Shown here: positions 423-56,500 of the stretch, in pieces
Layout of the letters: every line of letters starts with the position of its first letter
Position numbering within the stretch: the first letter of the stretch is position 1
Assembly (NCBI GenBank): GCA_047495785.1
Contig: JBLDXI010000042.1
Span: forward strand, 3,100,001 to 3,164,000
DNA length: 64,000 bases
From: Lepidodermella squamata
Lineage: Eukaryota; Animalia; Gastrotricha
Direction of reading: 5' to 3'
Made by a program: the position numbers and the translations under genes
Notes under the pieces: model-generated
The model's input: the letters and a program-made list of their open reading frames with translations, nothing else
The model's database searches: none
Told to the model about the DNA's origin: nothing

Positions 423-918
423 CGCTTCTTGATGATGTTTATTCATTGAGCCTTTACAGTCTATGTTGCAGATAGCGGCAGTCTGGGGTAGTAGCTACAC
501 GAAATGCGACTTATTTCAGCTGCGCAAATATGAAAGTAGTGTTCATGCGAATAGAGAGTTGTGTCGGCCGTGCTTGGCGTACTGGTCCCGGTGCTTCGCT
601 TTCGACTTCTACGACACAAAATCAGGGGGCTTGTTTTGAGTAAAGCACCTTTAGGTTCAACGGAGATCAATTAGAGAATCAATTTTGAATTAATTTCCAA
701 CATGCTTGAAACTAACGGATATCCTTTGCGGTGAAGTTCTCATCTTAATTTTCTACGCCAAGCGTGTCTGCTGTTCTCTCCCAGGAAGTGAAATGGCGCG
801 ATGTGAAAACGGAGAAGAATAAGAGGAAAGTGGGCGGAGGGATTGCGCAATATAAATGCGAATAATGAAGCTCAAAGATCGACATTGTTCATATTGCGAG
901 GCAAATAGGGTCTTCGAA

Positions 919-3300
919 ATGATCTTGATGCCTTTGACCGCCCTGTTAAGCTGGATAGGGCAGAAGCCAGTAACGGCCGAGATCAACATGACTTCAATCA
1001 TGAGTCCTATCGAAAAGCCTTACACCATCAAACTGCTGAACATGCTACCCACTTGGCTTACTTCGAGCGTCAAAACGGTTGAATTGCTCACTCTTATCGT
1101 AAATTCCAGGCGAGATGTCTTGCCAAACTATCGACTGGAGGTTCAAATCGAGGATGACGATGTTGGCAGGCTGTCATCCCAGCGGGTGATTTCATTCGCC
1201 CGTCAATTTAATGGCATGACGAATCGATCAATCGTTCAATCGCCAATAGTTGTTGGACCCTTTTATTCAACTGGGTGTAAGCAAATCGGGAAATTCATGC
1301 ATTACATCAATCAAGTCGACATAGCCACCAGCTGTACATCCCCAGTTCTCAACGATCGTCAGCTGTACCGCAATCTATACCTGACCCAAACAACTGACAA
1401 GTACACAGCTCAGCCAATACTCAACTTCATCAGAGAGATTGGTAAATGGAATAAAATCGCGATAATCTCTCACACAGGGTCTGCAAACGACTACTCAAAT
1501 GCTATATTCATCCACCAGAAAGCTGTGGAGGCTAATTTCACAGTAAAATGGTTTGACCTGGTTGACGGGGCTGTTATGACTGACGAGGCGATAATATCCC
1601 TGAAAGAATCGGATGCTCGCATAATAATTGCTTACATGTCAGACCTGAATATGCTCTATTCTTTCATATGCAAGACTCTGCAGTTTGGTTTAACCGGCCC
1701 GAAGTACGTCTTTATTCTGAACCTTGAATCTTACATAGATGATTATAGCGGAAGGCCGACATTTTGCTCGGATGAAGATTTTGAGAAACAAATGCCGAGT
1801 AGCTACTGGTTCGGACTTTCAATCTCATCGGCTGACAATAAACTCAAAACCCAGCTGGGCTATAGTTCTTTCGAGTTTGATGAGGCCATCTCGAAGTTAA
1901 CAAATGGATCTGTTAGGGAGGCCCATCCTGCAACACACGACAGCTTGCTGCTGGCAGTCATGGCTTTGGACAACACCGAGAAAGAGTTAGCGAAGCTTAA
2001 TATGTCATTGCTGAATTATCCGCAGCATCCTGATGTCGTAATGCGAGCTGCAAATCAATCTGTTTTAAATTCGAGATTGGTCGGTGTTCGAATTGGCTTG
2101 ATGACTTACTCCAAGGGTGGCCTTCCAGATCGGGACAATAAAGTAATCTCATATTACTCCAAGGATCAAAAGAGGCCGGTGGATTTTGCCAATTTAAAGC
2201 AAAAGCCAAATTCCCCAGATTTTTATTACGATAGCTACTTCATTGAATTCATGCAAGGATACCAAAATCTCACATCTCTTCAACTCCCAAAATTCGACTC
2301 GAGGCCTATTATAAAATCGCGGGATAAAATCTCAATTGAAGTGTTCGCAGTCATCCTTATTTTGAGCGGCGCAGGTACTGCAGCTCTATTTTATCCTATG
2401 CGGTTGTCCTATCACTTGAATTTCACTCTAAAATGGCAACTACTTTTGACGATGTCTGGGTGTCTTTTGCTGAATGTTGCAGCAAGCCTGTACGCGATTC
2501 CTTACAATTGGTCTGATTCATTGGCAATATGGAATGCTTCTCTAGTTATTACAGTGATTGGAGCTTCCTTGATTAACGGAACATTTGCCTTTCAACACAT
2601 TATCTTGGAACACGCTTTCAAAACTCTTAGCGCCCAACGAGCTTCTTCAGCGTTGATGTGGACAAAATCTGATCACGTTTCGTTACGGGTCTCTGCAAAT
2701 CATACCTCGACTTCTTCCTTCAATAAAACATCACTAAGGCCGAGTTCGGTGGCTGAAGTCGAGGAAATTAATGATGATTTTAATAAAAAGGTCGATCGGA
2801 GCATCGCTGTATCATCCATCAGTTTTGCTGGTTTGAATGCGGTCATTCTTGTGGTATGGTTGATAGGACTTGGTGGGGTGACGTGTTCGTTAACACTGAA
2901 CTCTAAAATAGACGATGGCCAAGCGGATGTTTTCATAGAGCAATGGCTATTCGATTGCTCTTCTCGCAGTGGCTCAGTTTCAGCTTGGCTATTGTCCGTT
3001 GCGTTTCTGAGCTTGGCTGTCCTTCTTCTTGGTGCATTTTCTGCTTATCATATTTCAAAGCGATTGAAATTACGACGTTTCGGCAGGAAGTATCAGACAC
3101 AAATATATCGCTGGGGCCTGGCTAATGCAGTATTCTTGCTTTTAGGTGGGTTGCTGATCGTTTTTATTCTCAATGGGCAGAACTCTAAGCAGAAAATAGC
3201 TTTGGCGGTTGACAGCATTTTATTATCTCTGATTACATCAGTAGTGCTTACGTTGGCGTTGCGAGCTAATAGAGGGACAGCTGAGCAGAGCCGGCAATGA
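919..3300 (+). CDS. Class C GPCR, GABA-B-like (Venus flytrap plus 7TM, no Cys-rich domain), intronless
   Basis: ORF 856..3300 with a likely signal-peptide start at 919. It has ANF-receptor-type motifs (VNSRRDVLPNYRLEV, IVVGPFYS, WNKIAII, LKESDARIII, GLTGPKYVFIL) and seven hydrophobic segments. Confidence 0.85.
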   Translation: MILMPLTALLSWIGQKPVTAEINMTSIMSPIEKPYTIKLLNMLPTWLTSSVKTVELLTLIVNSRRDVLPNYRLEVQIEDDDVGRLSSQRVISFARQFNGMTNRSIVQSPIVVGPFYSTGCKQIGKFMHYINQVDIATSCTSPVLNDRQLYRNLYLTQTTDKYTAQPILNFIREIGKWNKIAIISHTGSANDYSNAIFIHQKAVEANFTVKWFDLVDGAVMTDEAIISLKESDARIIIAYMSDLNMLYSFICKTLQFGLTGPKYVFILNLESYIDDYSGRPTFCSDEDFEKQMPSSYWFGLSISSADNKLKTQLGYSSFEFDEAISKLTNGSVREAHPATHDSLLLAVMALDNTEKELAKLNMSLLNYPQHPDVVMRAANQSVLNSRLVGVRIGLMTYSKGGLPDRDNKVISYYSKDQKRPVDFANLKQKPNSPDFYYDSYFIEFMQGYQNLTSLQLPKFDSRPIIKSRDKISIEVFAVILILSGAGTAALFYPMRLSYHLNFTLKWQLLLTMSGCLLLNVAASLYAIPYNWSDSLAIWNASLVITVIGASLINGTFAFQHIILEHAFKTLSAQRASSALMWTKSDHVSLRVSANHTSTSSFNKTSLRPSSVAEVEEINDDFNKKVDRSIAVSSISFAGLNAVILVVWLIGLGGVTCSLTLNSKIDDGQADVFIEQWLFDCSSRSGSVSAWLLSVAFLSLAVLLLGAFSAYHISKRLKLRRFGRKYQTQIYRWGLANAVFLLLGGLLIVFILNGQNSKQKIALAVDSILLSLITSVVLTLALRANRGTAEQSRQ

Positions 3301-4442: not shown

Positions 4443-6773
4443 ATGTTTTCGATTTCAGCTTTCATCTTGTATTTAGCAGTATGGCTAGAATCGAGCTACC
4501 AACTTAACATCACTGAATTGAAACCTATTAATAAGAAATTTACTATCAAATTGCTTAATATGATGCCACAAACCACTGCACTATCCCTGCAATATGCCAA
4601 AGGTTGCGAGTTTCTCGCCATGATTGTCAATTCCAGACGAGATATTCTACCGGACTATAGGCTGGAAGTTCAGATAGAGGAGGAGGATGTTGGCAGATTA
4701 GCAGCACGTAAGGTTATTGCTTTCAACCGGCAATTCGAAGGCACTGACATACCTCAAAATCTTGTTAAATCACCTATTGTTGTCGGGCCATTCTACTCGA
4801 CCGGTTGCCGTCAAATTGGAAGATTCATGCACTACATCGATCAAGTGGCCATTGCGACAGCTTGCACCTCATCTGTCCTTAGTGAGCACCACCTTTACCG
4901 CAACTTGTACCTCACCCAAACAACGGACAAATTCACAGCTCAACCTATACTAAATTTCATCAGGGAGTGGGGAAGGTGGAACAAAATCGCAATAATCTCA
5001 CAAACTAGTTCAGTCAATGACAATTCGAATGCTCTGTTCATCCATCAAAAGGCAGTTGAGGCAAACTTCACAGTTGTTTGGTTTGACCTCGAGAGTGAAG
5101 CTTTAATGACTGGTGAGATTATGAGTTCGCTCAAGCGATCGGACGCTCGCGTTATCATTGCGTACATTTCCGATCGAAATATGACCACTTCGTTTCTTTG
5201 CAAAGCCCTAGAACTTGGTATTACCGGACCTAAGTACGTGTTCATCCTCAATCTCGAGTCTTACGGACCGGCGAGTACGAGGCCAAAATTCTGCTCAGAT
5301 GAAGATTTTGAAAAGCAAATGCCGGGCACTTTCTGGTTTGGTCTATCAAAAAAACCGGTTGATCAGAATTTGAGGTCAGAGTTGGGTTATACCGCAGCAG
5401 AATATAGCAAAGCCTTAAACCAGTTCACAAATGGATCTGCGACAGAAGTTCATTCCTCAACTCATGACAGCTTGCTACTTGCAATCCTGGCTCTGAACAA
5501 CACAGAAACTGAGCTTAACAAGCTAAACCTTTCTCTTAAAGACTATCCTCGATTCCCGGAGTTGGTTATGAAGATTGCAAATCAGTCCGTGTTGAATGCA
5601 AGAGTGATTGGTCTAAGGATAGGACTGATGACCTATTCTAAAGGGGGCCTGCCCGACCGAGATAACAAAGTCATCTCATACTACTCGCAACAAATGGGAG
5701 AGCCTGTAGACTTTGCCCGGCTCAAACAGATACCAAACTCAGTTGATTTCGAATACAGCAGTTATTTCTTCGAGCCGATCCCTCCATTCAAAAATCAATC
5801 AATTTTCGATTTTCCGAAATTTGACTCAAGACCGACCGTTAAAATTATCGACACCGTCTCTTTGCCGTTATTCGTTGCTATCGTTGTTCTGTCCGGTGTT
5901 ATCGCATTATTTATGGCTTGCTTGTTAATAAGGGCTGCGATGAAGCCAGATGGACTTCCGCTTGTAGACACATTGACCCTTACCGGAGGCATAATCGTCA
6001 ACGTTGCTTCTTGCTTATTTACTCTACCTGGCGACTGGGGAGATTCGAGAACAGCATGGATAGCATCAGTAGTAACCTTCGTTATAGGAACATCGCTAAT
6101 AAATGGATCTCTGGCCTGTCAATTTCTGCAAATTAAACGCAATTTGGGAAAAATCATCCCGATCAGAATAGCCTCTTCTATGACTCAAGCATATTTTACC
6201 ATGCGATCGCGCCCTACTAGGTCGAATAGATATCGCTCGAGATTTTCTCCTATCATGGATGAAAATGATACCGATGATATCTCACTGAAAGGTGCAGATA
6301 AAGCAGCAGCTTCATTTTCGGTTTATTTTTTCATTGCCAACGCCGTATTTTTAGCAGTATGGCTTGCTGGTCTTGATGGAGTTAGCTGCAATTCTCGTCT
6401 TGTTGAAACGGAAGATAATTCGGAAGATGATTTATTCCTCGAAACCTGGCAGTTCATGTGTGACTCTGAAATCGGGTCAATAACGATATGGACCTTGTCT
6501 CTAGCTGCGATTCATGTCATCGTTCTGCTGCTGGGCGCAATGGCGGCTTATCAAATTTCTAAAAGAACCGACTTCCGACGTTATTGCACGACTTACAAAT
6601 TGCATTTGAGAAGATGGGGACTTGCTAATTCAGCTCTCTTGCTACTCGGAGGCATGTTGGTCATGTTTGTTCTCAACGCAAGCACTTCCTCGCAGCGAAT
6701 CGCGATGGCAACATTAGGGCTGCTCCTAACCTCTATAACCGCTGTTGTGATTGCTGCAGCCATCAAGGCGTAA
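4443..6773 (+). CDS. Class C GPCR, GABA-B-like; tandem paralog of 919..3300, intronless
   Basis: 776-aa ORF with signal peptide, VFT domain and 7TM. Long stretches are identical to the first receptor (e.g. IGLMTYSKGGLPDRDNKVISYYS). Confidence 0.87.
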   Translation: MFSISAFILYLAVWLESSYQLNITELKPINKKFTIKLLNMMPQTTALSLQYAKGCEFLAMIVNSRRDILPDYRLEVQIEEEDVGRLAARKVIAFNRQFEGTDIPQNLVKSPIVVGPFYSTGCRQIGRFMHYIDQVAIATACTSSVLSEHHLYRNLYLTQTTDKFTAQPILNFIREWGRWNKIAIISQTSSVNDNSNALFIHQKAVEANFTVVWFDLESEALMTGEIMSSLKRSDARVIIAYISDRNMTTSFLCKALELGITGPKYVFILNLESYGPASTRPKFCSDEDFEKQMPGTFWFGLSKKPVDQNLRSELGYTAAEYSKALNQFTNGSATEVHSSTHDSLLLAILALNNTETELNKLNLSLKDYPRFPELVMKIANQSVLNARVIGLRIGLMTYSKGGLPDRDNKVISYYSQQMGEPVDFARLKQIPNSVDFEYSSYFFEPIPPFKNQSIFDFPKFDSRPTVKIIDTVSLPLFVAIVVLSGVIALFMACLLIRAAMKPDGLPLVDTLTLTGGIIVNVASCLFTLPGDWGDSRTAWIASVVTFVIGTSLINGSLACQFLQIKRNLGKIIPIRIASSMTQAYFTMRSRPTRSNRYRSRFSPIMDENDTDDISLKGADKAAASFSVYFFIANAVFLAVWLAGLDGVSCNSRLVETEDNSEDDLFLETWQFMCDSEIGSITIWTLSLAAIHVIVLLLGAMAAYQISKRTDFRRYCTTYKLHLRRWGLANSALLLLGGMLVMFVLNASTSSQRIAMATLGLLLTSITAVVIAAAIKA

Positions 6774-8584: not shown

Positions 8585-9133
8585 TCAGCTTGGTGAAACT
8601 CTCGGCGTTACACCAATGCTGTTATTTTTCGCTAGTGATTTGGACGCCTTGACTGAAGTTCGATCTGAGAGCAGCCAGCGCAGTTGTTTTGTAATCATGT
8701 CATGTTTAGAATGACATTCTTCTTCATCTGAAAAAACATTTTCATGCAATCCCGACTCAGCGCCCAATCCATCCTAATGATTTGAAGATAAATGAAAAAT
8801 TATACTCACATCATATTTGGAGAACTCACGCTTTGATTCATAGGCTTTTGGGTAGCTTGAAGGTCGAAATCAGGAATGTCGTCATCATAAGATAGGAGAA
8901 GACTAAGGGCTATTGATCTCGGCCTTGGTTGAGGGCCTGCATCCGACATCACCTGCTAAACTATAGGAATATAAAAACTATTGATCCAGACGTCAGGAAT
9001 TTCTCACCTTTGGTGCGGAGGAAAGATTCCTTAATCCACTGCAACCCGTACTCAGACTTCTCGTTCGTTCATCTTGAAACTTAGATGAATGCGGCTTGGA
9101 TTGCTTCACTACTAATCGCTTTTGATTCTTCAT
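8585..9133 (-). CDS. Orphan LxxLL microprotein A (145 aa)
   Basis: Exons 9133-9008, 8952-8830 and 8773-8585, with in-frame GT-AG introns of 55 and 56 nt. Motifs SIALSLLLS and ITKQLRWLLSD. Confidence 0.6.
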
Positions 9134-9404
9134 CTCAAGCTAAACTTTTTTAGAATAAGGAAACCTAAAAATGCATTTGAGAAAATGAGTAGTTAAGTTG
9201 GTTTATCGTCTTAATGCGAGGCTAGAAATGAGATGACCACCAAAGTTCTTCTTTGTGCATGTATAGGGGTAAACTGGCGACGAGAAATCAGCCTCACTGG
9301 TTGTTATTCTTTAAAATGAAGCAGATAAATAAATTCGGGCCTGGATTATATTTTTTTACTGCCAGCAGAAAAAGTCACCCAATTCGGGTGTAAAATCACC
9401 TTAA

Positions 9405-9806
9405 CCCTTAGCCGCCGAAGACGTGTACACGCGTTAATTCCGGAGAAAATTCACCGTGGTCGGAGGATTTGGGCTATCGAACCCATTGTTGCGTCATAAA
9501 TTATGATAAATCAATAGCAAGAAACAAGCACTCCCCGAAAATCCAAATTTTCAAAGCCATTCTGACCAGGTCGAAAATAGTGAGACAAATTTTAAATGAC
9601 TTGTAAACACGTCATGAAAACGCGTTAACACGTCATAGCAACGGCAACCCAGGTAAATTTCTTCAGAAAAAGAGGTCCGGCTTTCAATCTAAGGCTAAAT
9701 GTAAGACTTTCTGCCGACTCAGAATTTGATTTTAGCCTCTTCTTGATTTTCTGGGATTTTCTGAAAGGTGCTCGAGTTAACACGTCATTGCGCCGGCGTC
9801 TAAGGG
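9405..9806. mobile_element. piggyBac-type MITE (402 bp)
   Basis: TTAA on both sides (9401-9404 and 9807-9810). TIRs CCCTTAGCCGCCG / CCCTTAGACGCCG match at 12 of 13 positions; no ORF. Confidence 0.85.
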
Positions 9807-10851
9807 TTAATTACTAGTTCATTTTTTCTGGTGCATGAGATATCCCGAATAGTCAAGAGGAACAAATAAATTAGAGCTTAATACGGTCAATTGCCATTAT
9901 TAAATGTTATAAAACTTGGTCAGTGATATTTAGGACGCCGTTCTTCTAAAATGGTCAGTGTCTGAAATGGTCCAGTGATCATCCATGTGATTATTTAAAT
10001 ATTAAATAGCCAGAATAGCCAGAAAAACAAGGACGATTGACCTGAATAATAAGCTCGCAAATACATGATGAGCATTTTGGCAATATCTAGTGTTCATATA
10101 ACGTCTACTATAATTGAATATCTGGCCCTCTGTCTTAGCAAATTCAATGTCACGAGTATATCACTAGTTCGAGACATTGTGATTCATTTGATGATAATCT
10201 GACAAGCGAAGTGAATGGAATGATGAGTTCTCGTAACACCGTTCAGGACACGTAAAATATAGCTATAATTCTAAAAAGTCAGATAATTTAGGTTTGCTCT
10301 AACTTGCGGTAAATCTGCTGCGTGAATCCATGCCAGACTGACATCGTATGGTGGTAGTAATAAAATAATATCACAAACATTTAAAATTATGGGATATTGT
10401 GCGTAAACGCATGGGCAGCAAAGCGGTAAAAACTGAACCGGCTAAGTGCAGTAACAGCGGAAACTAAAGCTGTTTGCTAAATAGCTTATAGTCATTCTTA
10501 CAGGAGAGTAAAGCCAGCAAAGAAAATTCTTGGAAAAAGATCCAAACCAGTCTGATGATATTTAATGATATTGATTTTATGAAATCTGCAATAAATCCAT
10601 ATAAAATTCGAGAATCAAACCGAAAATGGTTTTCAGTTACAGATGAATCATCCAAAGTCGAAAATGTCCCAGTTGGGTTCTGGATGTGAATGTTGCATCA
10701 ATGAAAAGTGGGGTTCCGGTGCGAAATCCGAACGTTCTTGCACTAAGCTTTTTCGACTCAAAAATTACTTTTATTAGTAATCATTGTATAAAATTATAAG
10801 TTCCTTGAAATAATCACTGAGAAAGCATATATCATAAGTTCAATTTGCCAG

Positions 10852-11271
10852 TTAATTTTTAGAGTCAAGCATCCAAGCTAAGCAGCGCCAAACAGAGCTT
10901 CTGCTGCGGAATTCTGGTATAGTAGCAGTAGCCCCACAATTGGTGGATGCGTTTTCGTTACTGGTTTCAACAAGTTTTCGCAATGGCTCTGCTCCAACTT
11001 TGCATGGAGCCGCTTGACTTGCGTTGTCCGAGGCTGTTGGAACGACGTTCAAGTGAATATTCTCGGCTTGTTTTACAAGACAAAATGAATTCGGATGAGG
11101 ATTCGTTTCTTTGATACGTTTAACCTAGAAATGAAATGAAGCGGTTATTTTTGCCTAATAGCTGGCAGATAGATATTAACAAACCTGGTGTTCATTTTCG
11201 CTATCACTTTGCCGGCGTTTCTTGGCGACTTTCGGCAGATCAAAGCTCAATGGTTGACTTGCAAGAGCCAT
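10852..11271 (-). CDS. Orphan LxxLL-like microprotein B (119 aa) with NLS
   Basis: Exons 11271-11185 and 11124-10852 with a 60-nt intron. Basic KKRR...KRIK segment; motifs PLRKLVE and VWRCLAWMLD. Confidence 0.62.
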
Positions 11272-12533
11272 TTGTAAGTTCTCAGAAACTGTCATTAAAT
11301 TCTGATAAAATCAGTTTTAGAATTGCGTAAAAGCTGACAAGCAACGTTACCTTTTATACTCCATTTAGCTCTGTCCGATCCAGTAAGGTGACGTTATTGC
11401 GATATATAACAATATCAATGTCTCAATTATCTTGCCTACTGTACATCAGGCCTCTGAAACTGGGCACCGATTGAACCGTAGCATTCATATCGGGCACGTT
11501 TGATTACGGCATGCCGGAAAACCTTGACGCCGTGTCCTTCCGCTGGTCTATTCCCTCAAAATCAAGTACTTTCACGTCTGTACTTCAACAAGTAGTGCTC
11601 CAAAGTTTGTCTAGATAATGCTATTTAAGTTATTAATCATGGAACTTACGACAAAACTTGACGCAACATTTAATTAGCTTTTGTCTTGAACGTCGAAGTG
11701 AGTCACCGGCAGAACTAGCGCACGTTATCTACTAATAACAGCTAATTAAAGCCGCCCGACATAGGGCGCGTGTAAAACGAAGTGTCGCCAGCTTCCGTGG
11801 TGTGGACTCGCACGATCATCACGCGACTTAAATGTCTTCTTGCAATTTAAACCTGAAAATGTGCGTCCGGATAATGAAAAACGCCATGTCGGGTTTTGTT
11901 GGTGACATGGGACATGGGATAGCAGAGATCGCCACTTTAATTGGCTTATCGCATTGCGACACCTCATATGGACATGCCCACCAGACCCTTTTGTTGCATG
12001 CTAATGATCTCCCAAACAAATCAAGTTCGGGGACTTGAAAATGCTATACATGGTTTAATTAATCATTATATAATTAAAAGTCTTTAGGAGGATAGACGTG
12101 GAACGATTCACCTCTAGTCGATACTTGAGACGACAGACTCATTTAAAGAGACAATTGTTTCAGAAAGAGTTTCCACGAAAAAATTCAGTCATTGAGACAA
12201 CAAGTCGTTCGTTTAACCAACTGAATCTCATTGCCTCATTACCATTACTAGGTTCCTCCATCGTGGCTAAAATCAGTTTCAGCTATCATTGCTACCTACA
12301 TGGAAAATGTTTCGACAGCTCCTTGATTTGCTATGGGGATTACAGCTTGTTTCTGCCCGTTATAGAATCTATGTGCTTGTAGCGAGTTCGAATACTTCAT
12401 TTGGATGGTCAGTTTCCGGTCCGCTCAGATCGCATAAAACTACTGGAGCATAGCATTCCAAGTTTTATTCATATTCGCTTCAGAATTTCTACCTCGAATC
12501 AATTTACTCATCTTGGATGGATGTCAGTTCAGC

Positions 12534-14012
12534 TTAATAATCGGTCGGAAATTTTTTTGCCAGACATGCCAAGTTGTAATCAGCATAGGACTTCGGGGTA
12601 AACAGCGACAGGTGTGGGCGATTGGCCTGAAGAGCCCTAGCCAAGTGATTGCGCTCTGATTGGATTTGCAACAAAATGCTCGTTATCTGACCAACTTTCA
12701 CGCTGCGGTCATTGTCTGACACGTAATTGCCATCATTCAACTCGACAGCTGCCTTCAACTTATTTAGAGCGTGGGGCCTTGATTGTCCTAAGCGATAATT
12801 GAATTCAAAACACATACAGCTTGACAATATTATTGCGAAAACCTGTAATGAAAAGTGTCACTAACAGCAACGAAAACTCCCTCGGTGTTGGATGCCAAGC
12901 ATTGAGTACGCTGGCCAGGTGGCAACACTGTTGATAATAGGTCTGTCATATACACAAAATTTGAACTATTGAATAAGGAAAGCTAGGAACTTACTGCAAA
13001 TTCTGGCAAAAACTGTAAAATGATTTCGCCTTTGTGCTGAGATAAGCCGAAAGGTGCAGGCTCTAGGCGGTTAGTTTCTGCAAGAATAATAGGCAGCCAA
13101 AGCTCTGGTTGCTCTAAAGCTATTTCTGATGGCTCGCCAATGCAATCCGCCAGCTTTCGGAGGTAGTTATTCGCAGCTTTTGAACCATGCTCAAAGCTCT
13201 CCATCATCACAGTCCAGCAATCGGTGTCGCTGCACATGTACGTCAGTCTTGCATCGTTCCTAGCATGGGGTAGCTGAAATCGGAAGGTAACATGAACGTA
13301 TGCTTTGAAGGATATAGTTAGGTTACCAATGCCAACGATGCCGACAATTCCAGAGTCGCACTCATCACCTTGTCTCTTATGACTTCAAGTGATATACCTT
13401 CAGGAGAACCACTCTTATATGCAACGGTTGATAGTCTTTCTGGAAGGCTACTGAAGCTGCCATCAGCTGTCCCTTCTCTAAAGAAGTGCTCTGGGAAGTA
13501 TGTATAAGAATGAAATTATGAAAAAATCAGAATGACAGCCTCACCTGAGCCGATATCCATGCATCTCATGAAGCGGCATTTAGGACATGACATTCGAAGG
13601 AACACGCCGGAACCAGTTAGAATGGCGTTACGGCTTGCGACGGCGCATTTGTCGGTACCTGTGGTACAACGAAGTTTAGCAGCCCTGGCAGTCAAGCCAT
13701 GATTAGAAGCGTGTCGTTTGAAAAATTTCTGAAAAACAATGCTCCTGAAGCCATTTATCCTATGCAGTAATGTATAACCTTGCAAGCTTGGCATATCGGA
13801 ACGGATTGAGCTCTCACAGGGAACCGACATACCTATATACGAGTAAGGCATTTCGAAATTAAGTTCGAATTGAATAGTCGAATTGAATAGTTTACCAAAC
13901 AGCTGACGACTTCTGGTCCTATAATAGCTCTGGAACTTCCGGCTGCCTTCTTTCCCATCGAGATAACTTCAGATTTGCTTGCCCGAGGCTCAATGGTTAC
14001 TACATTTGCCAT
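12534..14012 (-). CDS. Divergent nuclear receptor (C4 zinc-finger DBD plus degenerate LBD, 383 aa)
   Basis: Seven exons: 14012-13896, 13832-13779, 13728-13545, 13490-13327, 13273-12995, 12942-12843, 12787-12534; all introns are 50-63 nt and in frame. DBD reads CLVC..CQACKKFFKRH..C..C..CPKCRFMRCMDIG. LBD helix-7/8-like segment LNAWHPTPREFSLLLVTLF. Confidence 0.85.
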
Positions 14013-14910
14013 GGAATATGACTATCGCACTTGGAAAGTTGAAATAGGTAATTTCTTGTAAATAAGTCGTCTAACAAATTCGAGACAATAATTCGCTCAT
14101 ACGGTAGCAGATAGAGCGTGCCGAGATGGGTCTGAAGGGATGTAGGTGAAATCAATTACGATAGCGGACGATTCGCCCACACATGGGTGTGACTTTGTGG
14201 ACATCTGCACGATTGCCCGATCACTACCCTGGGCATTAACTCATTTGTGATCAATTATCAGATAAAAGTTCAAACGCTATTTCAAGCTCTGTTTGTTTAA
14301 TTTGACTTCAATCCGTGCATACGTCAGAGCCGACTCTCATAAATTAGGAATTAACTCGGTCTCAGCTTGAAATAACGTCAGCAGCTCGCGACATCCTTCC
14401 TTGCCACCGACATGCGATAGGTGCGGGTACTTGATAAATTCGGTCAACTTTTGCTCGAGATTTTCCAAAATAAGTAGCTTGCAATTTCAACCATTCGGTT
14501 GATTAATGCCGAACTATAAATTACTCCAAGCCATCCAACAGATATGAGATAACAGTAATAAAGTTAACGCGCTGCCCGAAAATGATATCCGTCTCATGAC
14601 AGAGTAAATGACAGAGTTGGAACAATTGAATTTTGGAACCCGCTAATCTGACTATTTCGGTTCGGCATTCTGACTTGAAATTGCTCTTATTTTGGGCAGT
14701 TCGGTTGATCAGTCCTCAAGGAATCAGCATCCAAGTAATTAGTAATTAGATGGACGAGTGGGCCTGCTGCAAACGCCACTGAAAGCCAACAAGCGCTCTT
14801 TTAAATCGTCAAGTGAATTTAAAACCTCACATCTATGAGTAATTTATTCATGTCACCATGTCACCTTATATAAACGAGAAAATAAAGCAATATACAAGAG
14901 TAAATTCGAG

Positions 14911-15278
14911 TCAACATTTTCCGAGATCTGAAATTTGAAGTCCGAATCCAGCCTGGGCCATCTGGTGTAGGGATTTATAATTCAGAGTTTTCTGACAAGC
15001 TTCAGCATCGTCATAAAGGAGCCAAGCCAAACTTCGAGTTAAAGCGTCTGAATTGCGCTGGTCCATTTTGGGAGCCAGGAAACTTCCGTCGCAAATAGCT
15101 ACACTGTTTCTTCTCAGCTGAAAGTAGAAATAGTAGGTAAATATCCGATTAGAGTGGCTATATAAGTTGCTACCTCAAAGGTACTCGTCTTATGCTGTTG
15201 TAGTCTTCCTACCAACTCCCTTTCCGTGGTCAGCAATGCGGCTAGTGTTATTGAAGGAAGGTTCGTATTGACAGCCAT
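14911..15278 (-). CDS. Orphan LxxLL microprotein D (at least 103 aa; may extend 5')
   Basis: Exons 15278-15174 and 15117-14911 with a 56-nt intron; absent from the ORF track. Motifs PSITLAALLT and ALTRSLAWLLYD. Confidence 0.62.
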
Positions 15279-16150
15279 CTTATTCTCATATAGTAACGGA
15301 CTGGCATTTTCGGGCTCATAGCTGGGTAGATATATACACTTCGAGGTTCGAGACTGGTGACCTTATTTGTAACTTGTGACTACAACCTGTACCGAGCAAA
15401 AAATGTACCATTGTACGATAATGATAAAATAGTGGTCGAAAGACCGGTAAATGTCTTTTGAACTATGTATATGTGCAGTTAAAATCGTTGACGAGAGAAG
15501 TAACATGGTGCCCTAATTCTTGACCTAAAAATAGCAATCATCCCATGCCAGGCATAGTTTTGATGAGATTTACGTTGACAAATCAACGTTTGGGGACATT
15601 CAGTGCCAATGCATCTTGCATGTGATCAATTTTCTCAGTGTCTATGGTCTAGGACTCGTATTAGCCTCGCCCTATTATTGTATTATTGAATCATTTTGAT
15701 CATTATACAGACGTGTTTCACAGAATTGTACGTGAATACAAACTCAATTGACGTAATTGCTTTGAAAAGTGAGACTTTACATTGAGAGAGATGTAAAAGT
15801 GGACCATGGTAAATGGTTGAAGGGGGTATGGCAGACTGCAGGCCTAATCAACGAGGTTGTGGATCTTGGCTGCCACACAAAATTGAACATCAAATCAGTC
15901 ACGGGTTCAGTCACGGGTCGTATATGGAAGAAAAGAATCCCCATCGCTCAGTGTTCCCCACGACGTTATTTTTTATTTGCAAGGGCTGATGTTTCGAACA
16001 ATCGAACGTCGGGGATTTTGGCGAAAATCCTTGAATTGAGTCAGGAATTATAGAGCACAAGAAATCTCATAGCTGTTTTATTTTTGCTCAGGGCACAGTC
16101 AATATCAAACAAATCATTTTTGTTATTGGTTTTTGTTAATTTACGCAGTT

Positions 16151-16658
16151 TCATTGATTAGCGCACGCACTGTGGCGATTTGAGAGGATGGGTAAGCCGT
16201 AAATCGGAATTTGATGCATTTTCCCAGTCTTCGAAGTCACCGGCGCGATGTCTTGCTCAAGGAGCCAGGCCAAACAGTGACTCAGTGCCGTAGTTTTAGA
16301 AATCTGGCCTCCATTTTGGATGGGCAAGTCTTTTGATGGAGTTTCGCTATCCTCGGGTTGACTTGTTACCAAGCGCCTCAACGCATCACTTGAGTTTGAC
16401 GATGCTTGATGCTTTTGAATTTGATTTTCCAAGTACCTGTGGAGAACGTGGTTTGGTCCTAAATCCATTTCCTTGATTGGCTTTTTTAGGGTAACCTGCA
16501 ATTATCAAATAAATTATGAATGAGGCTAGTTAAAGCTTAAGCTGTCAACTAACCTTTTTCTTGAGCCAGATGTACTCTTGGAAAGATGACATGCTTTCTT
16601 TTGAGGAAATTGAATGTTGCTGCTGGATTTGCGCAGTCAAATTTTGTGACGAGATCAT
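16151..16658 (-). CDS. Orphan LxxLL microprotein C (149 aa)
   Basis: Exons 16658-16554 and 16495-16151 with a 58-nt intron. Motifs VLHRYLE, ALRRLVT and ALSHCLAWLLEQ. Confidence 0.65.
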
Positions 16659-18190
16659 TAGGCTGCGGCTTTGAGCTTAACAAAACTTTGAGATTGTGTC
16701 TGGGTGAAACAGCGCCAACTTCCGCAGCTTATCCCAACTTAAATAGAAGTAGGAAAGTGACCGAAATCAGGTGTCCGCAATGTGTCAAACTTGACTAAAT
16801 TTAGTAGCGCGTCATGACCAAATTAATTCCTAGCTGGTATAAGTGACGTCGATCGACATTAAGTCGGGTAAAATTATACCTAGTATCGCTTGACCTAATT
16901 TGCCATCAACCAGAACGAGACATTTGCCTTAAGCAATATTGACCAGCCGTGAAACAAGACGTGGGCGGTATCGCTTGGCTTGATCACTAAATGAATGTCG
17001 ATCCCTTGATCGTATGGGAAACTCGGCTAATGTTCAACTTCGTTTTCGCTTAGGACAGACAGCTGGCTTACGATTTGAGCAAAATAACAATCATGTACTA
17101 AAGCCATTTAAACATTCGACATTTAAGACACATTATTGAGTTGATCAGCATTATCGATGAAAAGAGTGACCGTCAGAAAATCTCTGGTCCAAATATATGG
17201 CCTCATGATGACGATTAATGAACTAAATTTACTAAAAATGAACAGTCAAATTAGTTGTGCAATTGGATTCATGATAATTTCTTTGTCATGCTTAGACGAT
17301 ATTTTTTATAAATGTACGTTAGTGGATAAGTCGGGCGTATTTCAATGTTAGGGATTAAAATCTCGGTCAAACGCACATCAGCAGCAATGTTTCATTCCTT
17401 GATTAAACAGAAATGAGGCTAAATTGGATCGGCTACCCGGTGACGGTGCCAAACCTAAAACTTGAAATCATAGACATGTTCGGAGCGGCCTCAGAATAAG
17501 ACAGTACGTCGGTGATCCGGTGAACAGAAAAATACATTCTTTTCATTTGATGAATGAACAACTTTGAAGCAGCTTCACTGTCAACAGCTCCAGAATATGA
17601 GATAAGCGCATGAATCAATTGGTGAAATTTGCATAAATACAGGAGTGGATCCAGGTGTTTATTCAATTTGGCAGTAGGATAGTAAATTTTATGAATGGAA
17701 ATAGCTGCTGTTTACGGCCTGGTATCATACGCCAGACAACGGCAAATTTAAAACCACCTTGTATTCCAAAACCATTTGTATATGATTAACTCACACTGAA
17801 ACTCAGACTATAAGTCGCACTTCAGTTGCCGCCTCATTGTTAACTACGGTTAGCTATGGTAGGCCTATGCTTTTATGGTCTATGGTTTCCTATAAGAAGA
17901 AGCAAGTAAACATACGAGCCTTACTTCTTTTGAGTTTGTTCAATTTATATATTATGCAAGTCGGCCACGCGTTTAGCGGTCCCATAGACGATGAAAAACA
18001 ACAACACGAATGCGTCAAAAGCTTGGTTAGTTCTTATACCGAGGCCTTTTGCTCGTAGCAATTGCATCAAATGCACGGAACCCTGTAGTTTTTCTCTCCT
18101 TGTTAAGGCCTAGTTTCACTTTTCTGAACTTATACACTCCGGACATTTGCAACAAGCAGATTGTTACAGAATTTCTCGATCGTGATTGAG

Positions 18191-32488: not shown

Positions 32489-35400
32489 TTAGTCGAGTAA
32501 AATGTAATTTTCATCAGCGATCGATCGTTGCTTTCTGGAAAAGCCGGTAGTCACTTTTTGAATCCAATCCATAAAATGCCAGACGCGCTAAAAGAAGGGT
32601 AAAATGGAATAATTCAAACTGCTCATTCAATTCGGCTATGGTGAGAAGTTAAAAGGAGGCTTGGCGCCATGAAAATAGATATGAAAATAGAAAAATCTTA
32701 CCGTGTAAACACCAGGTGCATTTTTGCCGCCGCATAATTTGCCAAACGAAACAATGCCGTGAAGTTCCCACCGGCCGTTGACGTAGCAGTGCAACGGCCC
32801 GCCCGAGTCACCCTGGCACGCGTCTATGCCGCCCTGCTGGTAGCCAGCACAAAACATGCTCGGCAATACGAGGACCTGGTAATTAGTGTTCATGCCTCTG
32901 CACACGTTGTTGTCGATAATCGGCACTACAGCTTCTTTAAAGATCACGTTCTCGTAGCTTGAATTTTCGGTGTCACCCCAGCCAACAACAATACACCTGT
33001 CGGAAAGGCGGACATCTCGACTAGGCAGGCAGATGGATTCTCCCAAATGAGTTGCTTGGATCTGCAAAATCGATAAAGAATTGATGACAAATCAATACAC
33101 CTTTTTGACTTTGCAATTTCATTATTTTTATTAAAGAAAAACGCGTTTATTTTTTCATGATTATCAGCGTATTCATTTTATTCATTTTCTTACTTTTTTC
33201 TACCCAAGGATTTACTCGATCTTCGAAGGTTCGCTGTATGCGACTACGAAACCCGAATGGGATGAATTATATATCAAATTGAAGCTAGATATATAATCTT
33301 TTCAAATAGTATGCGATCAGATCGACAAAATCATTATTTCTTTCGCAGAAACTAAGGAATACGTAGAATGAACTGCAAAGATGTTTTCCTTGGGTAGTTT
33401 TTATATTTTATAGGTATAAGGCCCCTCCCTCCTCCCCAAAAATGATTAGAACAATCAGGCGAAGGTGATATCTCGAGTAGAAGCGATAGAACCTCAAAAA
33501 ATTTGGCTTTAGTAGCATTTTGGGCAATAGCTTACGCGGGTGCTGAGGTAGTTTTCACAAATATTGCTTTGGTTTCATCATGAAATGATGAAATTAGCGA
33601 AGACTAAGTAATAGAATAGTTCCTTAGTAGTTATTTGTTGAAAAATAAACATCATTGTAGGTAAAATCAGAAGAAACTTTCCGATCAACCAGTCGGCTAA
33701 AACGTTGAATACCTTCAAGAACAAAATGGCATCCAGTATTCTAATTTCACAGCTAGATAGATCAGATCTCTAGCTTCAATTTGATATATAATTCATCCCA
33801 TTCGGGTTTCGTATTCGCATACAGCGAACCTTCGAAGATCGAGTAAATCCTTAGGTAGAAAAAAGTAAGAAAATGAATAAAATGAATACGCTGATAATGA
33901 TGAAAAAATAAACGCGTGTTTCTTTAATAAAAAGAATGAAATTGCAAAGTAAAAAAGGTGTATAGAGTAAAAGTCATTTTAAACATTTCAAAATTACCCC
34001 TTCCTCGAGTAAAATGAGTGCGATGTCGTTTTGTTTGCGATTCGGTGGTTTCCCGTAATTCTTATGTATCATGATATGCTTGATTTTCGGTTTCAGCAGC
34101 GGTGATTTGCCGTCGAAAGCGATATTTTCCAACTTTTCATGGCGACCAATGACCGCCTCCCAGCCATGTTTCTGCTTTAAAAGATATTCCTTGACGAAGC
34201 AATGAGCGGCAGTAACGATCCACCCTAATACAAATAAACTCGAGTTTCACGTGGCGAAAAATGTTGTGATTTGATACTTCTGTTGAGAATCGAAGCCCCA
34301 CACAAGTGCTCGCCACGAAATGCCAGGGAGACGGCCCATTTCCAAGCCCCTCTGCCGGCTTCATTGCCTCCAACGATTCGCTGCAAAGGCCCAGAGCGGA
34401 ACCCCATCGCTGGTGGTAGAGCATTCGATCGGCCGCAATTCTGCGACAGCGCGAAGGTCGGACGGCTGATTCTAGAGCCATCATTCGTTTCATTGCGACT
34501 CGCAATGACAGTAAACCCCATGGAGAAACGGTGTTTCATCCCATTCGGGTAGAAATATATATCAAGAGGCCGAAATGTTGTAGCTTTATCTTCATCATCA
34601 AACGGCGGAACTTCGTCACCGCAAGAGTAATGAGTTTTGACGATTTCGCCAGTCTTGGGGGATACTAACTCGATGGTAAGAATAGGCTTCGAGCAGTCGG
34701 TATGACGCGGATCGACGGCAAAGTCGTAGAAGCGGATGCCGATAGCTTGCTGGTACGAACCGGCTGGCAGGCGAGGGTCTAGGCGCCAGTGGCATCTGAC
34801 GACGCCAGGTGCGATATTCTCGGGGCTGCTGATTATGCCGCTGCGAGCGTGGTAGGCTACTCCAGCGCCAGCGCAAGGATTCGGCACCCATTTCGCAGCT
34901 AATTGCTGGCGATTTTCAACGAATATTTGCAACTCTGCAGGCTTTGCTGTCGCCTTCATAACAAAAACATGCATAATTTGGAATATTTTCGAAGGTTAAA
35001 AATTAGCTTGAAAATCGTGATATTTGAAGCAAAGGTCGGCAAGGTGGTTCCTGGTTTTTCGAAATTTTTTGAGAATTTTACTAATTTTACCTGATTTTTG
35101 GCAATTTAAAACATGTTATTCACTTAATGCGTAATTAGTGGGTCATTTCGAACTCATTTGCATATGCATCCATTATGTGCGTATACTCATTTGCATATGC
35201 AACGGCCTTTCCTCTTGAAATGCTGGTCTAATTTTGAAATTTGAACTTCTAAGTGAGAGAGATGATGAACAACATTTCTAGTTTAAAAGTACCTTCGGCT
35301 TTCCAGGCCAGTCACCTTTATGTTCTGGGTCTTCATGTTCGCCCGTGTCATACGTAATTGTCCCATCACTCCTTTCCTCATCCTCATCTTGATTTTCATT

Positions 35401-36897
35401 ATTCATTCCATAATCATCCTCGCCATCTTCGTCCCTAATATCTTCCGTATTATCGTCGTCATCTATCGCAATTTCATCAGGATCAGTCGCAGCCTCATTC
35501 ACGCCAACCGCTTCATTTTCGCGAATTTCAGACACCTCAATCAAATCAGCCCGCTCTGACGGCCGTTCTAAATATTTGTCCGCCTTCACAGCCGTCCACG
35601 TAAATTCAAAGCCGTCGTACGCGTTTTCAGAATCAGTCTCGAATTCGACCAAAAGCTGGTTGGTTGGTACAACTGAAGCATTAGGAGGAAAGGCGCCGCA
35701 AATTGCTGCAACCAGTCTTACAGGCTCAACGAATTTTTCATCGACAGAGAAAAACGACAATCTGTCATGAAGGCAATCTTCGGCATGCACATCGTCCGAC
35801 ATTTCTATGCCAAATTTGTTCATATTGAATTCAATTTTGATGTGCTATAATGAAGGTTAAAAATTTGGAAAATTTGGACAACAAATTAGGTCAATTACCG
35901 TTCCAGTTGGTGTTAGGATTCGCCATCTGCACCGAGCGTTGTTTTGGTAAGGACTGGACGGATAGCCCATAGAACGTATCACCCCAGTTTTGCCGGTTTG
36001 AAATGACTCATCGCCACAATTTCGGGGAAGATCGCTTCTCGTCAGAGGACCAGCGTGGCATGATGACTCATCCTCGCCATTTTTGCAATCTCTAGAGCCA
36101 TCGCACTGAAAATCAATTCAATACATGAATGAAAATCGATCAGCATAATACCTTGAATTCATCTGGTAAGCAACGGGTGCCGAGTACAGGATCAGGGCAG
36201 GCGAAAGAATTATTTCTCGGGCAAATTGCGAACTCATCAATGCCAGACTCATCTCGATCCTTAGCTGATAACCGCTCGAACTCAATACGGAATCCTCGGA
36301 AAGGTTCGGAAATTAGGACTGTTATCGTCACAGAGCTACCAATTGGGACATTGTAGGGTGAGACGAAACCGTCTCCGCAATGGATGCCGAGTAATTTAGT
36401 ATCCTGCCCTTTTTCATGGGACTGGATTTTTACGTAATTTCGCTCGCAAACCAGCTCATTAATGTTGGAAATCTCCTCCGAGATATAATCTCCATTAAAA
36501 TACGGAATGTCAAAATCAACAAATTCCAGTTTAATGAAAGCCTTATCGTCCGGGCTATCGGAACCTAGATCCAATCGCCATGAGCACCTCAAAGGAAGAG
36601 GATTGCCGACTTTAACCGTTAAGTTGGCAAGGAATCCTTCGAATTGGTGGCTGAGAAGCTCGCCGTAAGTTATCGATGATAGATCAACAATGTTGTCACC
36701 AGAACAAATGCCATGGTACGGCTGAATGTCCCGCCGTGCTGTAGCAAACAAAAAGGGCTGATTGATTTTCCAAGGAAAAAAACCTCGGCTTTCGAATTAT
36801 TACCTCGAAAATTGTTGTGAAAACCCGCGTAAATTGCTTCAACAATAGTATAAAAAATTACTAGTAGTACCAGCAGAAGGCCATGTATTCTGCCCAT
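32489..36897 (-). CDS. Secreted modular S1 serine protease: CUB-LDLa-CUB-acidic linker-CUB-trypsin (ovochymase/matriptase-like)
   Basis: Signal peptide and three CUB patterns (C..G.I.S..CRWRI/L). LDLa motif CDGSRDCKNGEDE, activation site R-IVGG, triad motifs TAAHC, NDIAL and GDSGGP, and S1 Asp in DACQ. Confidence 0.9.
33098..33960. mobile_element. Foldback/Tc1-mariner-type MITE with ~200-bp TIRs, in a protease intron
   Basis: 33098-33295 is a near-perfect reverse complement of about 33765-33960; flanked by TA (33096-33097 and 33961-33962). Confidence 0.9.
35041..35209. repeat. Interspersed repeat or DNA-transposon end (copy 1)
   Basis: Similar to 62243-62380; both end in atttgcatatgcaacggcctt. 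Confidence 0.7.
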
Positions 36898-53557: not shown

Positions 53558-56500
53558 TCAAACCAACGTGTACGAAACAAGCTCCATATTCAGCGCATCC
53601 CCAGTTATTGCCTCGACGAGGCCTGAAATGGTTTCATCAGCTTTCGATTGCGCGACGATGACGCGATCGTCTGGGGTGACTACGATAGCCGACGGGCGAC
53701 TGGGCGAAGATGGTGACAGCGTGATCATGTAGGTTTCCGAAAGCGCAGTGAAAACGGCGACAGAGCTTGTCGAGCGATCGGTGACAAACAAATTGCCTTC
53801 TTTGTCGGCGAACAGCCCAGCGCACGCGAATGGTGCCGGGGCAGACGAAGAGACCGAAATTGATCCAGAACGGCTACGGTTGACCGTCTCTTCGTCATTT
53901 GCAGACGAGACTGAAGACGAGGTTTGCTTCGATGCGGGCTGTTAAAAAAAGCATAGAAGGTTATTGACTGATCTTAAAAAGGTTCCTCTCAAACCAAACG
54001 CAAAAGCTGGGTTTTTTGTTGGGGCATAGCCAATTCTCCGCATAGCAAAAATTCTCGAAATGAAAACTTGATGCCTGTGTCCCTGCAAAAAGGTTGATTC
54101 CTTGTTTCTAAGCTTCAACCTTTGAAACAGGGGTCGCAACCGTTACCCAAGTATCCTAAAATTTGAATGCTTGTTCCCTTCCCAATAAGGTTTGTTCAAT
54201 CATTAGCTTTTGTGTTAAAACTCGCGTTTCTTCAGTATTAGAAAATTGTGACAAGCCAAGCAAGCAGGATAGAGTGATGTAAGGAAACGGCGATGAATTC
54301 TCGAAGATCTCATCTGTTTGTGATTAAAAATAGGAAAAGAAAACAGCAAAACAAGCCTCGGGTAGGTCAAGGGTCAGCGCGCTCATTACCAATGACTGAT
54401 GGCTGCTGGTGACCGTCGACGGTCCGAAAACAGCGGGAGAAACAGCAGCTGCCACTGAGGCGACCTTGATAACACCGAGGAGACGCAACGTGCAATCGGC
54501 GTAACGCCACGCCCTGATATCATCACCGAACAGCCCGACGCTGTAGATTGTGTTACCGCAGGTCGCGAGAAAACGAGGCACGGAACCTTTCCGCTGAAAG
54601 TGGACGATGTTCAGCAGATCACCGTGGTTTGTGTGGATGGTCATCCGAGTCTTGCCTGGGTCGGCAATAACATAAACACCGCCAGATGTCGCAGTGATCG
54701 CCCATGGTTTATCGAGCAACCCAGCGCCGAAAACATGGTTCAGCCGACCCTGCTGGTCGTAGACGTGAACAGCATGGGTAGCTGCATCTGTGATAGCGAT
54801 TTGGTTGTCGTAGACACACATCGCAGTTGGCTGAGCGAGTTTGTTAGAGCGCTGCGGGAAGAAGCACTTCAGCATGCCAGTCATATCGAAAATCTGAACT
54901 CGACGTTCGGAATTAGCGCTCAAAACGACTAGTTCTCCGGTTGAAAGTAGGGCCAAAGCGTCGACTGTTCTCAACTGACGACGGACATCATCCTTCATAA
55001 TGAAGGTCTGGGCGCCGCCTTGTGTCTGAATCAGAGAATCGCCTTCAGCTGCTGGTTTGTACTCAATAATCGGATCAGCATTAGCAGCACCTTCAGCTGG
55101 CATTATGGTGCGAACTAACCGGCCTAGTCTAACTTCGCTTTCGCCAGATAGGAACTGAACAGTGAGTTGGGTTCGATCTGCGAAACTCTCGACGCTGTAA
55201 GGTTCGAATTGAAGAGCTTCGTCCAGATCGTTCAAAACTTCGCCCTTCGCCTTTAGCTGCTCGATAGGCTCGAGATCCTTTCCTAGAACTGCTTTACCAG
55301 CTTCGACCGCACTTTGCAGCGTGACAATAGTTGAATCCATGCGTTTTCGCTCGCTCTCAATCGTAGCGAAGTCGAAGAGTTGGTCAAGCTCGTCAAGAAG
55401 CGTGTCCTTCTGCTTGTTAATCTGCGCAATCAAATTTTCGGCGATAGCGCATAATTCGGATTTAACAAGGTCCTTCTTATCGTTAACGTCCTTCTCAATC
55501 TGTCCGAGCTTTGTTCGTTTTTCGTTCAAGTCAGTCAGTTCGTTCTGAGCCTTGTCGATGTAGTTCTGGCACTCGGCCAGGAATTCTTGGCGAACCTCCT
55601 GTATCGCTTCAATTTCGTGACCAGCGTGATCTGTGACGGTACAAACGAGGCAAATCGGCCCTCGGCACTGGGTGCAAAAGAAGCAGACCGGTTCGCCGCC
55701 ATGCGTGTCACAACAGTGTTGCCGCGCCTTATCGCATAACTCATCATCGGTAAGAGTTAGCAAAGAATGCTTCGCCGTAACTTTGTTTTCGCGATGCCCA
55801 CTGCCACAGTCCTTACAAAGGTTGGTTTTGCACTCAAGGCAGAAGACCTTAGCCGGGGTAGGCTGGCCTTTGAAGTTGCAAATATGGCAGTCGGTGTCAT
55901 CTGTTCGCCGGCTTAGAACATCGCGAAGTCGTTCGACGAAAAACGAGTCTGGGAAACCCTCGGCGCCCTCCTTTGGCATGTAAACCTGGCGACGGCAAAT
56001 CGGGCAGCTGAACTTGCGAAAGTCGAGACGGTAGCTTTCCATGTACTTGTTCAAACACTCGAGGCAAAATGTGTGCAGGCACGGCAGGCTCTTCGGATTT
56101 TTGAAGACGTCGAAGCAGATTTTGCAGAGGAGAAATTCCTCACGAAGACACTCCCGCAAATCTTTACTCATCGAAGCAGCGGCGCCGTTTTCGCTCATTG
56201 AAGGCAGCGGGACATCTCCAGAGTGTTCAACTTCTTCCGTTCGCGAGGAAGTTCTATGCCGGAATCTGCTGCGAGTTCGAGTCGAAGAGTAATCATCTGA
56301 GGCGCTGTCTTCAGCGGTTTTTGTCGACTCCTCTTTTTCTTTTTCCGGGCTTTTCGACCGAGGCGAAGGTGGTGCAGCTGTAGTTGAAGTCGCGCCTCCT
56401 GAGTAGTAGGAGGTTCGATGTGATGGTACATAGCTAGACGAGTAGTTAGAGGTTGTTGAACTAGGGGTGTAGTAACTAGAGGATCCAGTGCCACTTCCGT

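Follow-up and report, generated by a model that had tools for sequence, protein, structure and literature searches.

Four small genes sharing one tryptophan-containing helical motif around a divergent nuclear receptor gene in the gastrotrich Lepidodermella squamata

Coregulators that act on nuclear receptors (NRs) through NR boxes, such as p160/SRC, PGC-1, RIP140, SHP and DAX-1, carry a short amphipathic LxxLL helix in a disordered chain. In canonical NR-box complexes, such as those of p160 coregulators, positions +2 and +3 of LxxLL face the solvent, away from the groove. We know of no NR coregulator that is encoded beside its receptor, and to our knowledge a genomically linked receptor-coregulator module has not been described for NRs. 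Among transcription factor genes of Drosophila, microproteins of the Bearded family are encoded within the E(spl) and Brd complexes, amid the E(spl) bHLH genes; these small, fast-evolving proteins have only short motifs in common, including an amphipathic helix, and they bind Neuralized, not the bHLH proteins. Here we describe a locus of the gastrotrich Lepidodermella squamata, at 8585-16658 of a 64-kb window, in which four small spliced genes (A, B, D and C) and an NR gene lying between B and D are all encoded on the minus strand. A preliminary description of this DNA had proposed that the four microproteins are dedicated coregulators, docking through an LxWLL helix on the ligand-binding domain of the neighbouring receptor and forming a self-contained unit with it. 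We consider it fairly probable instead that the four genes constitute a taxon-restricted tandem family whose products, disordered and probably nuclear, have retained a single docking helix, and that the receptor is their neighbour through the local density of NR genes.

The window is the whole stretch analysed (64,000 nucleotides (nt); contig JBLDXI010000042.1, positions 3,100,001 to 3,164,000, or C42:3100001-3164000) and belongs to a 121-Mb assembly. Gene models were built from a listing of open reading frames (ORFs), three-frame translation of the minus strand and reading of the DNA, with the following result (protein lengths in amino acids, aa; X1 is a public sequencing run described below):

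8585-9133, minus strand: gene A, 145 aa; exons 9133-9008, 8952-8830 and 8773-8585 (including the stop codon); open spliced model
10852-11271, minus strand: gene B, 119 aa; exons 11271-11185 and 11124-10852; open spliced model plus a splice in X1
12534-14012, minus strand: divergent NR, 378 aa; seven exons, 14012-13896, 13832-13779, 13728-13545, 13490-13327, 13273-12995, 12927-12843 and 12787-12534
14911-15278, minus strand: gene D, 103 aa; exons 15278-15174 and 15117-14911; open spliced model with a 56-nt GT..AG intron
16151-16658, minus strand: gene C, 149 aa; exons 16658-16554 and 16495-16151; open spliced model plus a splice in X1

The proposed arrangement of four small spliced minus-strand genes, two per side of the receptor, was borne out, all four models being open with GT..AG introns. 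The five introns of the microprotein genes measure 55-60 nt (55 and 56 nt in gene A) and the six of the receptor 50-67 nt; all eleven are bounded by GT..AG. All five genes are co-oriented within 8 kb, in the order C-D-[receptor]-B-A, and an AATAAA is present approximately 100 nt past the stop codon of gene A. When the five proteins were compared with the 64-kb window using tblastn, no extra copies or relics were found. Additionally, a 25-nt repeat (CGNGTTAACACGTCAT...) with a TGACGTGT-like core on the opposite strand occurs three times at 9600-9797, where its copies sit 470-660 nt upstream of the gene A start codon.

Each of the four microproteins contains the helix that had been quoted for it, here termed the W-box, and all four were found at the expected places on the minus strand:

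8695-8663, minus strand: W-box of A, ITKQLRWLLSD
10893-10861, minus strand: W-box of B, VWRCLAWMLDS
15042-15010, minus strand: W-box of D, LTRSLAWLLYD
16285-16253, minus strand: W-box of C, LSHCLAWLLEQ

These follow the pattern hydrophobic-x3-L-x-W-[LM]-L, usually with an acidic residue within the next three residues, and an alignment of the four proteins identified L, W and L of the motif and one Lys a few residues after it as invariant. Four copies of the core L.W[LM]L fall within the 8-kb cluster, against approximately 0.1 expected for a span of that size; all are on the same strand, and their ORFs measure 62-116 aa. In the other 56 kb of the window the core occurs twice, in ORFs of 10 and 23 aa, and a six-frame search of approximately 230 kb of other loci in the same genome detected two further occurrences. 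The clustering of this motif at the locus is beyond chance.

The upstream motifs that had been described are also present: SIALSLLL in A, SITLAALL in D, LRKLV in B and LRRLV in C. They are of two types, S-I-x-L-x-x-L-L in A and D and LR[KR]LV in B and C, and they precede the W-box by approximately 50-55 aa in A and D and approximately 31-32 aa in B and C. In A, LSLLL lies within SIALSLLL and is encoded by exon 2; in D, LAALL lies within SITLAALL, close to the N-terminus. The claim that the shared helix fits an NR box held for three proteins, since the pattern [^P]L[^P][^P]LL[^P] was met twice in A, twice in D and once in C, whereas B has LAWML (and LRKLV). Likewise, the proposed corepressor spacing was recovered in its loose form (hydrophobic-x3-L-x3-L), but the strict CoRNR-box, L-x2-[HI]-I-x2-[IAV]-[IL], was not matched in any of the four proteins. 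At least one LxxLL was present in 3-28% of composition-matched shuffles.

Outside these motifs the proteins differ widely, in agreement with the low overall similarity noted before. Smith-Waterman comparison against shuffles gave the best z-score for B-C (4.0) and values of 3.1-3.2 for A-D, B-D and D-C, with none for A-B and A-C. To characterize the proteins further, exon 2 of gene C was modelled in AlphaFold2 with the four-sequence alignment, which returned a mean predicted local distance difference test score of 56.7 and a predicted template modelling score of 0.23, without a globular fold. Helices were placed at exon-2 residues 15-30, 35-44 (LRRLV) and 68-82 (W-box); this coincidence of predicted helices with exactly the two conserved motifs would favour a family built around docking helices. 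The four small microproteins are probably largely disordered chains with helical docking motifs. No signal peptides or transmembrane stretches were seen by eye in any of them. In B, KKRRQSDSENEHQVKRIK across the exon junction fits the bipartite nuclear localization signal (NLS) pattern, as had been suggested, A and C hold basic clusters and the N-terminus of A is basic; judged by these features, the proteins are probably nuclear.

RNA evidence was available for part of the locus. Only two public runs, X1 and X2, contain this DNA, and they were compared over 10750-16700 (5,951 nt), a stretch that leaves gene A outside. X1 contigs join 11121 to 11182, skipping 11125-11184 (60 nt; CT..AC on the plus strand), and 16491 to 16550, skipping 16496-16553 (58 nt). 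The skipped segments are exactly the predicted introns of B and C, demonstrating that both genes are transcribed and spliced as modelled. X1 covers the exons of B and C and nothing between the genes, with word depths of approximately 20-30 for B and C. Gene D had zero cover in X1, and the receptor reached word depths of only approximately 1-4, one contig crossing its intron at 13491-13544 unspliced. Thus, of the splice junctions predicted earlier, those of B and C were confirmed, while D was without cover and the receptor intron was read through. For the suggested co-expression with the receptor, X1 gives no sign (approximately 20-30 for B and C, approximately 1-4 for the receptor, none for D), contig depth being unfit for ranking expression. 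X1 also has a loose poly-A end at 16176; it was ignored, since its contig matches poorly and a minus-strand transcript would have its tail on the other side.

Sequence variants were compared for the two expressed genes, with counts that are indicative only because they are drawn from the variants listed. Among these, gene C has five synonymous and no nonsynonymous changes and gene B four synonymous and eight nonsynonymous changes; the W-boxes of both genes and LRKLV of B contain none of the listed variants. X2, a genomic run, holds across 10750-16700 both a haplotype identical to the window and a second haplotype with approximately 3% divergence and small indels, such as a 10-nt deletion at 14048 and a 9-nt insertion after 11380, indicating that the sampled individual or population is highly heterozygous.

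The four microproteins, probably one taxon-restricted family defined mainly by a single helix, had no relatives in any of the collections examined. A profile of the four W-box exons run against the 121-Mb genome recovered only A, B, C and D, in a search that scores only candidates passing a loose first look. The same W-box profile detected no relative among 1.84 billion representative proteins; two matches in that collection were long repetitive proteins with nine matched stretches and without a W-box, and they were discarded as artefacts. Using exon 2 of gene C as the query, a word-indexed search of 5.8 billion proteins gave no match, the ESM Atlas no usable match and metagenome contigs no relative. 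A profile search of the PDB with the microproteins returned nothing, Pfam returned nothing significant on single exons of all five genes, and a search of the literature on LxxLL microproteins and nuclear receptors found nothing relevant.

We next consider the gene in the middle of the array. Single exons of the receptor fail Pfam (best zf-C4 match E 0.39, 11.7 bits), and its locus is absent among the genome-wide PF00105 matches listed. The weak single-exon score is explained by the two introns that interrupt the DNA-binding domain and by the unusual lengths of its loops. Once spliced across introns of 63 and 50 nt, the receptor reads ...SCL|VCRFPVRAQSVPICQACK|KFFKR..., giving a DNA-binding domain of the form C-x2-C-x11-C-x2-C-KKFFKR ... 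C-x6-C-x20-C-x2-C-RFMRC with eight zinc-ligand cysteines. The P-box CQACK|KFFKR is rejoined across the 50-nt intron (13778-13729), and paralogs have an intron at the same position. The spliced sequence matches the DNA-binding domain of a paralog at E 1e-16, a domain that itself passes PF00105 at 28.3 bits. A search of the genome with exon 3 gave 62 matches, the best of them on the same contig; the closest paralogs have in common the sequence CQACRKFF, an extended second finger and an intron separating the P-box from KFF.

A probable ligand-binding domain is encoded by exons 5-7. Exon 5 (12995-13273) had no direct match to PF00104 in Pfam, while the ligand-binding domain of paralog L038 passes it at 23.8 bits, and jackhmmer iterations started from exon 5 connected it with the ligand-binding domain of every NR compared (E down to 1e-30), including a cluster on contig C54 with two DNA-binding domains. 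Exon 6 (CCHLASVLNAWHPTPREFSLLLVTLFIT) matches the conserved W-x-P-x3-E block of the paralogs, keeping the invariant W, P and E, and the last exon aligns with the paralogs at the R-P-x-L ... DY end. At helices 3-5, exon 5 reads LADCIGEPSEIALEQPELW, with a proline at the helix-4 position. Two alternative models of the 3′ end were dropped, as paralog alignments back exons 12927-12843 and 12787-12534. The C54 cluster was also tried as a comparison set, but a hidden Markov model of 23 receptors scored the gene model at only 2-9 bits, and the exon-3 paralogs proved to be the right set. Judged on these alignments, the central gene is a genuine, very derived member of a lineage-specific family of divergent NRs with at least 62 genes in this genome, in keeping with the lineage-specific receptor proposed in the preliminary description. 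This work therefore yields a curated seven-exon model of a receptor that domain scans had missed.

Among other receptors of this genome, loci L007, L008 and L015 (contigs C42, C54 and C2) encode two DNA-binding domains within one ORF (2DBD-NRs), and the array on C54 at 2.55-2.67 Mb contains dozens of zf-C4 matches.

To what extent the receptor belongs with the microproteins depends on how often an NR gene would be found in such a span. More than 150 zf-C4 matches were obtained genome-wide, and at least ten NR genes lie over approximately 610 kb of contig C42 around the window:

C42, 2.68-3.29 Mb: receptor loci L037, L040, L041, L043, L047, L048, L051-L053 and L062, most of them of the CQAC[KR]KFF, long-second-finger subfamily; further members are on C20 (2.01-2.06 Mb), C26, C4, C10 and C19

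The chance of an NR gene in an 8-kb span is approximately 12% at this local density and approximately 1.3% at the genome-wide density. Because NR genes are dense on this contig, adjacency is weak evidence for a functional link. Moreover, no ORF with L.W[LM]L and no W-box profile match was found beside approximately 20 paralogous NR loci (3-14 kb per locus, the flanks of some spanning only 3-10 kb). The expectation that W-box genes cluster beside divergent NRs genome-wide was thus contradicted, the profile finding the four local genes only. Upstream k-mers and AGGTCA-type half-sites common to the genes were also sought, and nothing rose above shuffles. The Trp that defines the family occupies position +3 of LxxLL, a position that faces the solvent in canonical complexes, and canonical docking consequently fails to explain what is conserved.

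With no other W-box genes, dense NRs and no sign of co-expression, the step from adjacency to dedicated coregulators is unsupported, and we regard a set of coregulators acting on the neighbouring receptor as very unlikely. The same low credence attaches to its more specific form, in which the W-box proteins would be private cofactors or antagonists docking on a remodelled helix 3-5 surface of the receptor. Such a role would accommodate the NR-box pattern, found twice in A, twice in D and once in C, a W-box predicted to be helical in a disordered chain, the NLS-like segment of B, five co-oriented genes within 8 kb and the unique remodelling of helices 3-5. It must, however, be set against the lack of W-box genes elsewhere in the genome or beside the approximately 20 paralogous receptors, an adjacency expected by chance at approximately 1-12% given NR density, the frequency of LxxLL in composition-matched shuffles (3-28%), the invariant Trp at +3 that faces away from the groove, the absence of a common upstream motif, and the good cover of B and C in X1 where the receptor is barely covered and unspliced. 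Another possibility, unlikely in our judgement though deserving of serious attention, is that the proteins are motif-bearing regulators of another nuclear machine (e.g. a KIX/TAZ-type coactivator domain, a Mediator subunit or a ubiquitin ligase) and have only regulation or chromatin neighbourhood in common with the receptor. Two hydrophobic-xx-hydrophobic-hydrophobic helices per protein in a disordered, charged chain would suit such regulators, as would their orphan status, their fast divergence outside the motifs and the Bearded precedent in Drosophila, and a Trp conserved in this way is a typical feature of activation-domain-like motifs with a buried aromatic residue. Nevertheless, no candidate partner emerged, there is no homology to known motif-bearing families, and a common promoter motif indicating co-regulation was not found. 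Least probable of all, in our assessment, is that the set consists, in part or as a whole, of young, weakly constrained or non-coding transcripts whose motif is a functionless relic of recent duplication. The eight nonsynonymous against four synonymous changes among the variants listed for B, the invisibility of D in X1 and the position of A outside the compared stretch, and the lack of homologs in any collection searched are all compatible with this. The paralogs, however, have diverged almost to noise and yet have kept the W-box in all four, which argues for selection; gene C has five synonymous changes and no nonsynonymous ones among the variants listed, and the four ORFs and five introns are all intact.

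The preferred explanation remains a taxon-restricted tandem family, and several observations weigh against it. Transcription is established for B and C and not for A and D (D being uncovered in X1, A outside the compared stretch). Similarity outside the motif is weak, and common descent of the four would rest largely on the motif and on position. A and D carry two strict LxxLL motifs each (p 0.007 and 0.034, respectively, against composition-matched shuffles), and B and C carry two LxxL-hydrophobic motifs each, a likeness to cofactors with multiple NR boxes. In an alignment of 34 ligand-binding-domain segments of this genome, only this receptor has lost the signature LPGF...EDR...LF of helices 3-5, the region of the coregulator groove, a loss that could fit a private partner of the receptor. 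Finally, the five genes, all co-oriented and with the receptor precisely in the middle of the two duplicated pairs, could form a functional unit.

Even so, a tandem family with a receptor as its neighbour would account for the locus as follows. The gene order C-D-[receptor]-B-A, together with the pairing of upstream motif types (B with C, A with D), suggests that the pairs C-D and B-A are probably tandem duplicates of one two-gene unit. The W-box helix would most likely serve as a short linear motif for docking on a folded protein; a single partner would then be common to all four microproteins, which would be its adaptors or compete for it. The position of the receptor inside the array would follow most simply from the high local density of NR genes. 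Understood in this way, the locus is a clean example of a young, expressed, disordered family in which selection holds one short docking helix; it would be useful for studies of orphan genes and of motif evolution, and is not surprising in itself. If the microproteins were instead to act on the receptor, this would be the first NR encoded together with its own small cofactors, and a simple system in which to study the emergence of new receptor-cofactor pairs in the course of a massive receptor expansion.

Other genes were noted elsewhere in the window. Two single-exon ORFs on the plus strand, at 856-3300 (814 aa) and 4443-6773 (776 aa), are tandem paralogs; both look receptor-like, a large domain of extracellular appearance preceding several hydrophobic segments in each. 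At 32636-36751 on the minus strand, ORFs that resemble CUB-type domains precede what looks like a trypsin-like serine protease domain (GDSGGP); together they are probably one multi-exon gene. At 54324-56717 on the minus strand, a single exon encodes a 797-aa TRIM-NHL-type protein (RING, B-box, coiled coil and NHL-like end) with a long Ser/Tyr/Gly-rich N-terminus; its neighbours in the ESM Atlas are TRIM2/TRIM-NHL clusters of molluscs, brachiopods and echinoderms.

Compared with described systems, the microproteins resemble the NR-box coregulators in their short helix within a disordered chain, in having more than one LxxL-type motif per protein and in their probable nuclear location. They share no sequence homology with these coregulators, which have hundreds to thousands of residues against 103-149 aa here. 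Known NR boxes do not require a Trp, whereas one is invariant inside the W-box, and any receptor binding by the microproteins is hypothetical. With the CoRNR-box corepressors (NCoR/SMRT) the W-box has in common the loose hydrophobic-x3-L-x3-L spacing, without the strict pattern and without homology. The Bearded family offers a likeness in arrangement; it belongs to a different phylum, with different motifs and no homology to the W-box microproteins. Bearded proteins bind an E3 ligase and not the neighbouring transcription factors, which shows that a place beside transcription factor genes does not have to imply binding to their products. The receptor itself resembles the expanded NRs of this genome, with their remodelled zinc fingers, and the 2DBD-NRs in its P-box CQACKK followed by FFKR, its eight cysteines and a probable ligand-binding domain that can be aligned with those of its paralogs. 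The loops of its fingers have 11 residues instead of 13 in the first and 20 instead of 9 in the second and, unlike the 2DBD-NRs, it has only one DNA-binding domain. The first DNA-binding domain of the 2DBD-NRs has the P-box CEACKK (PMC10497141), which resembles the CQACKK of the receptor described here.

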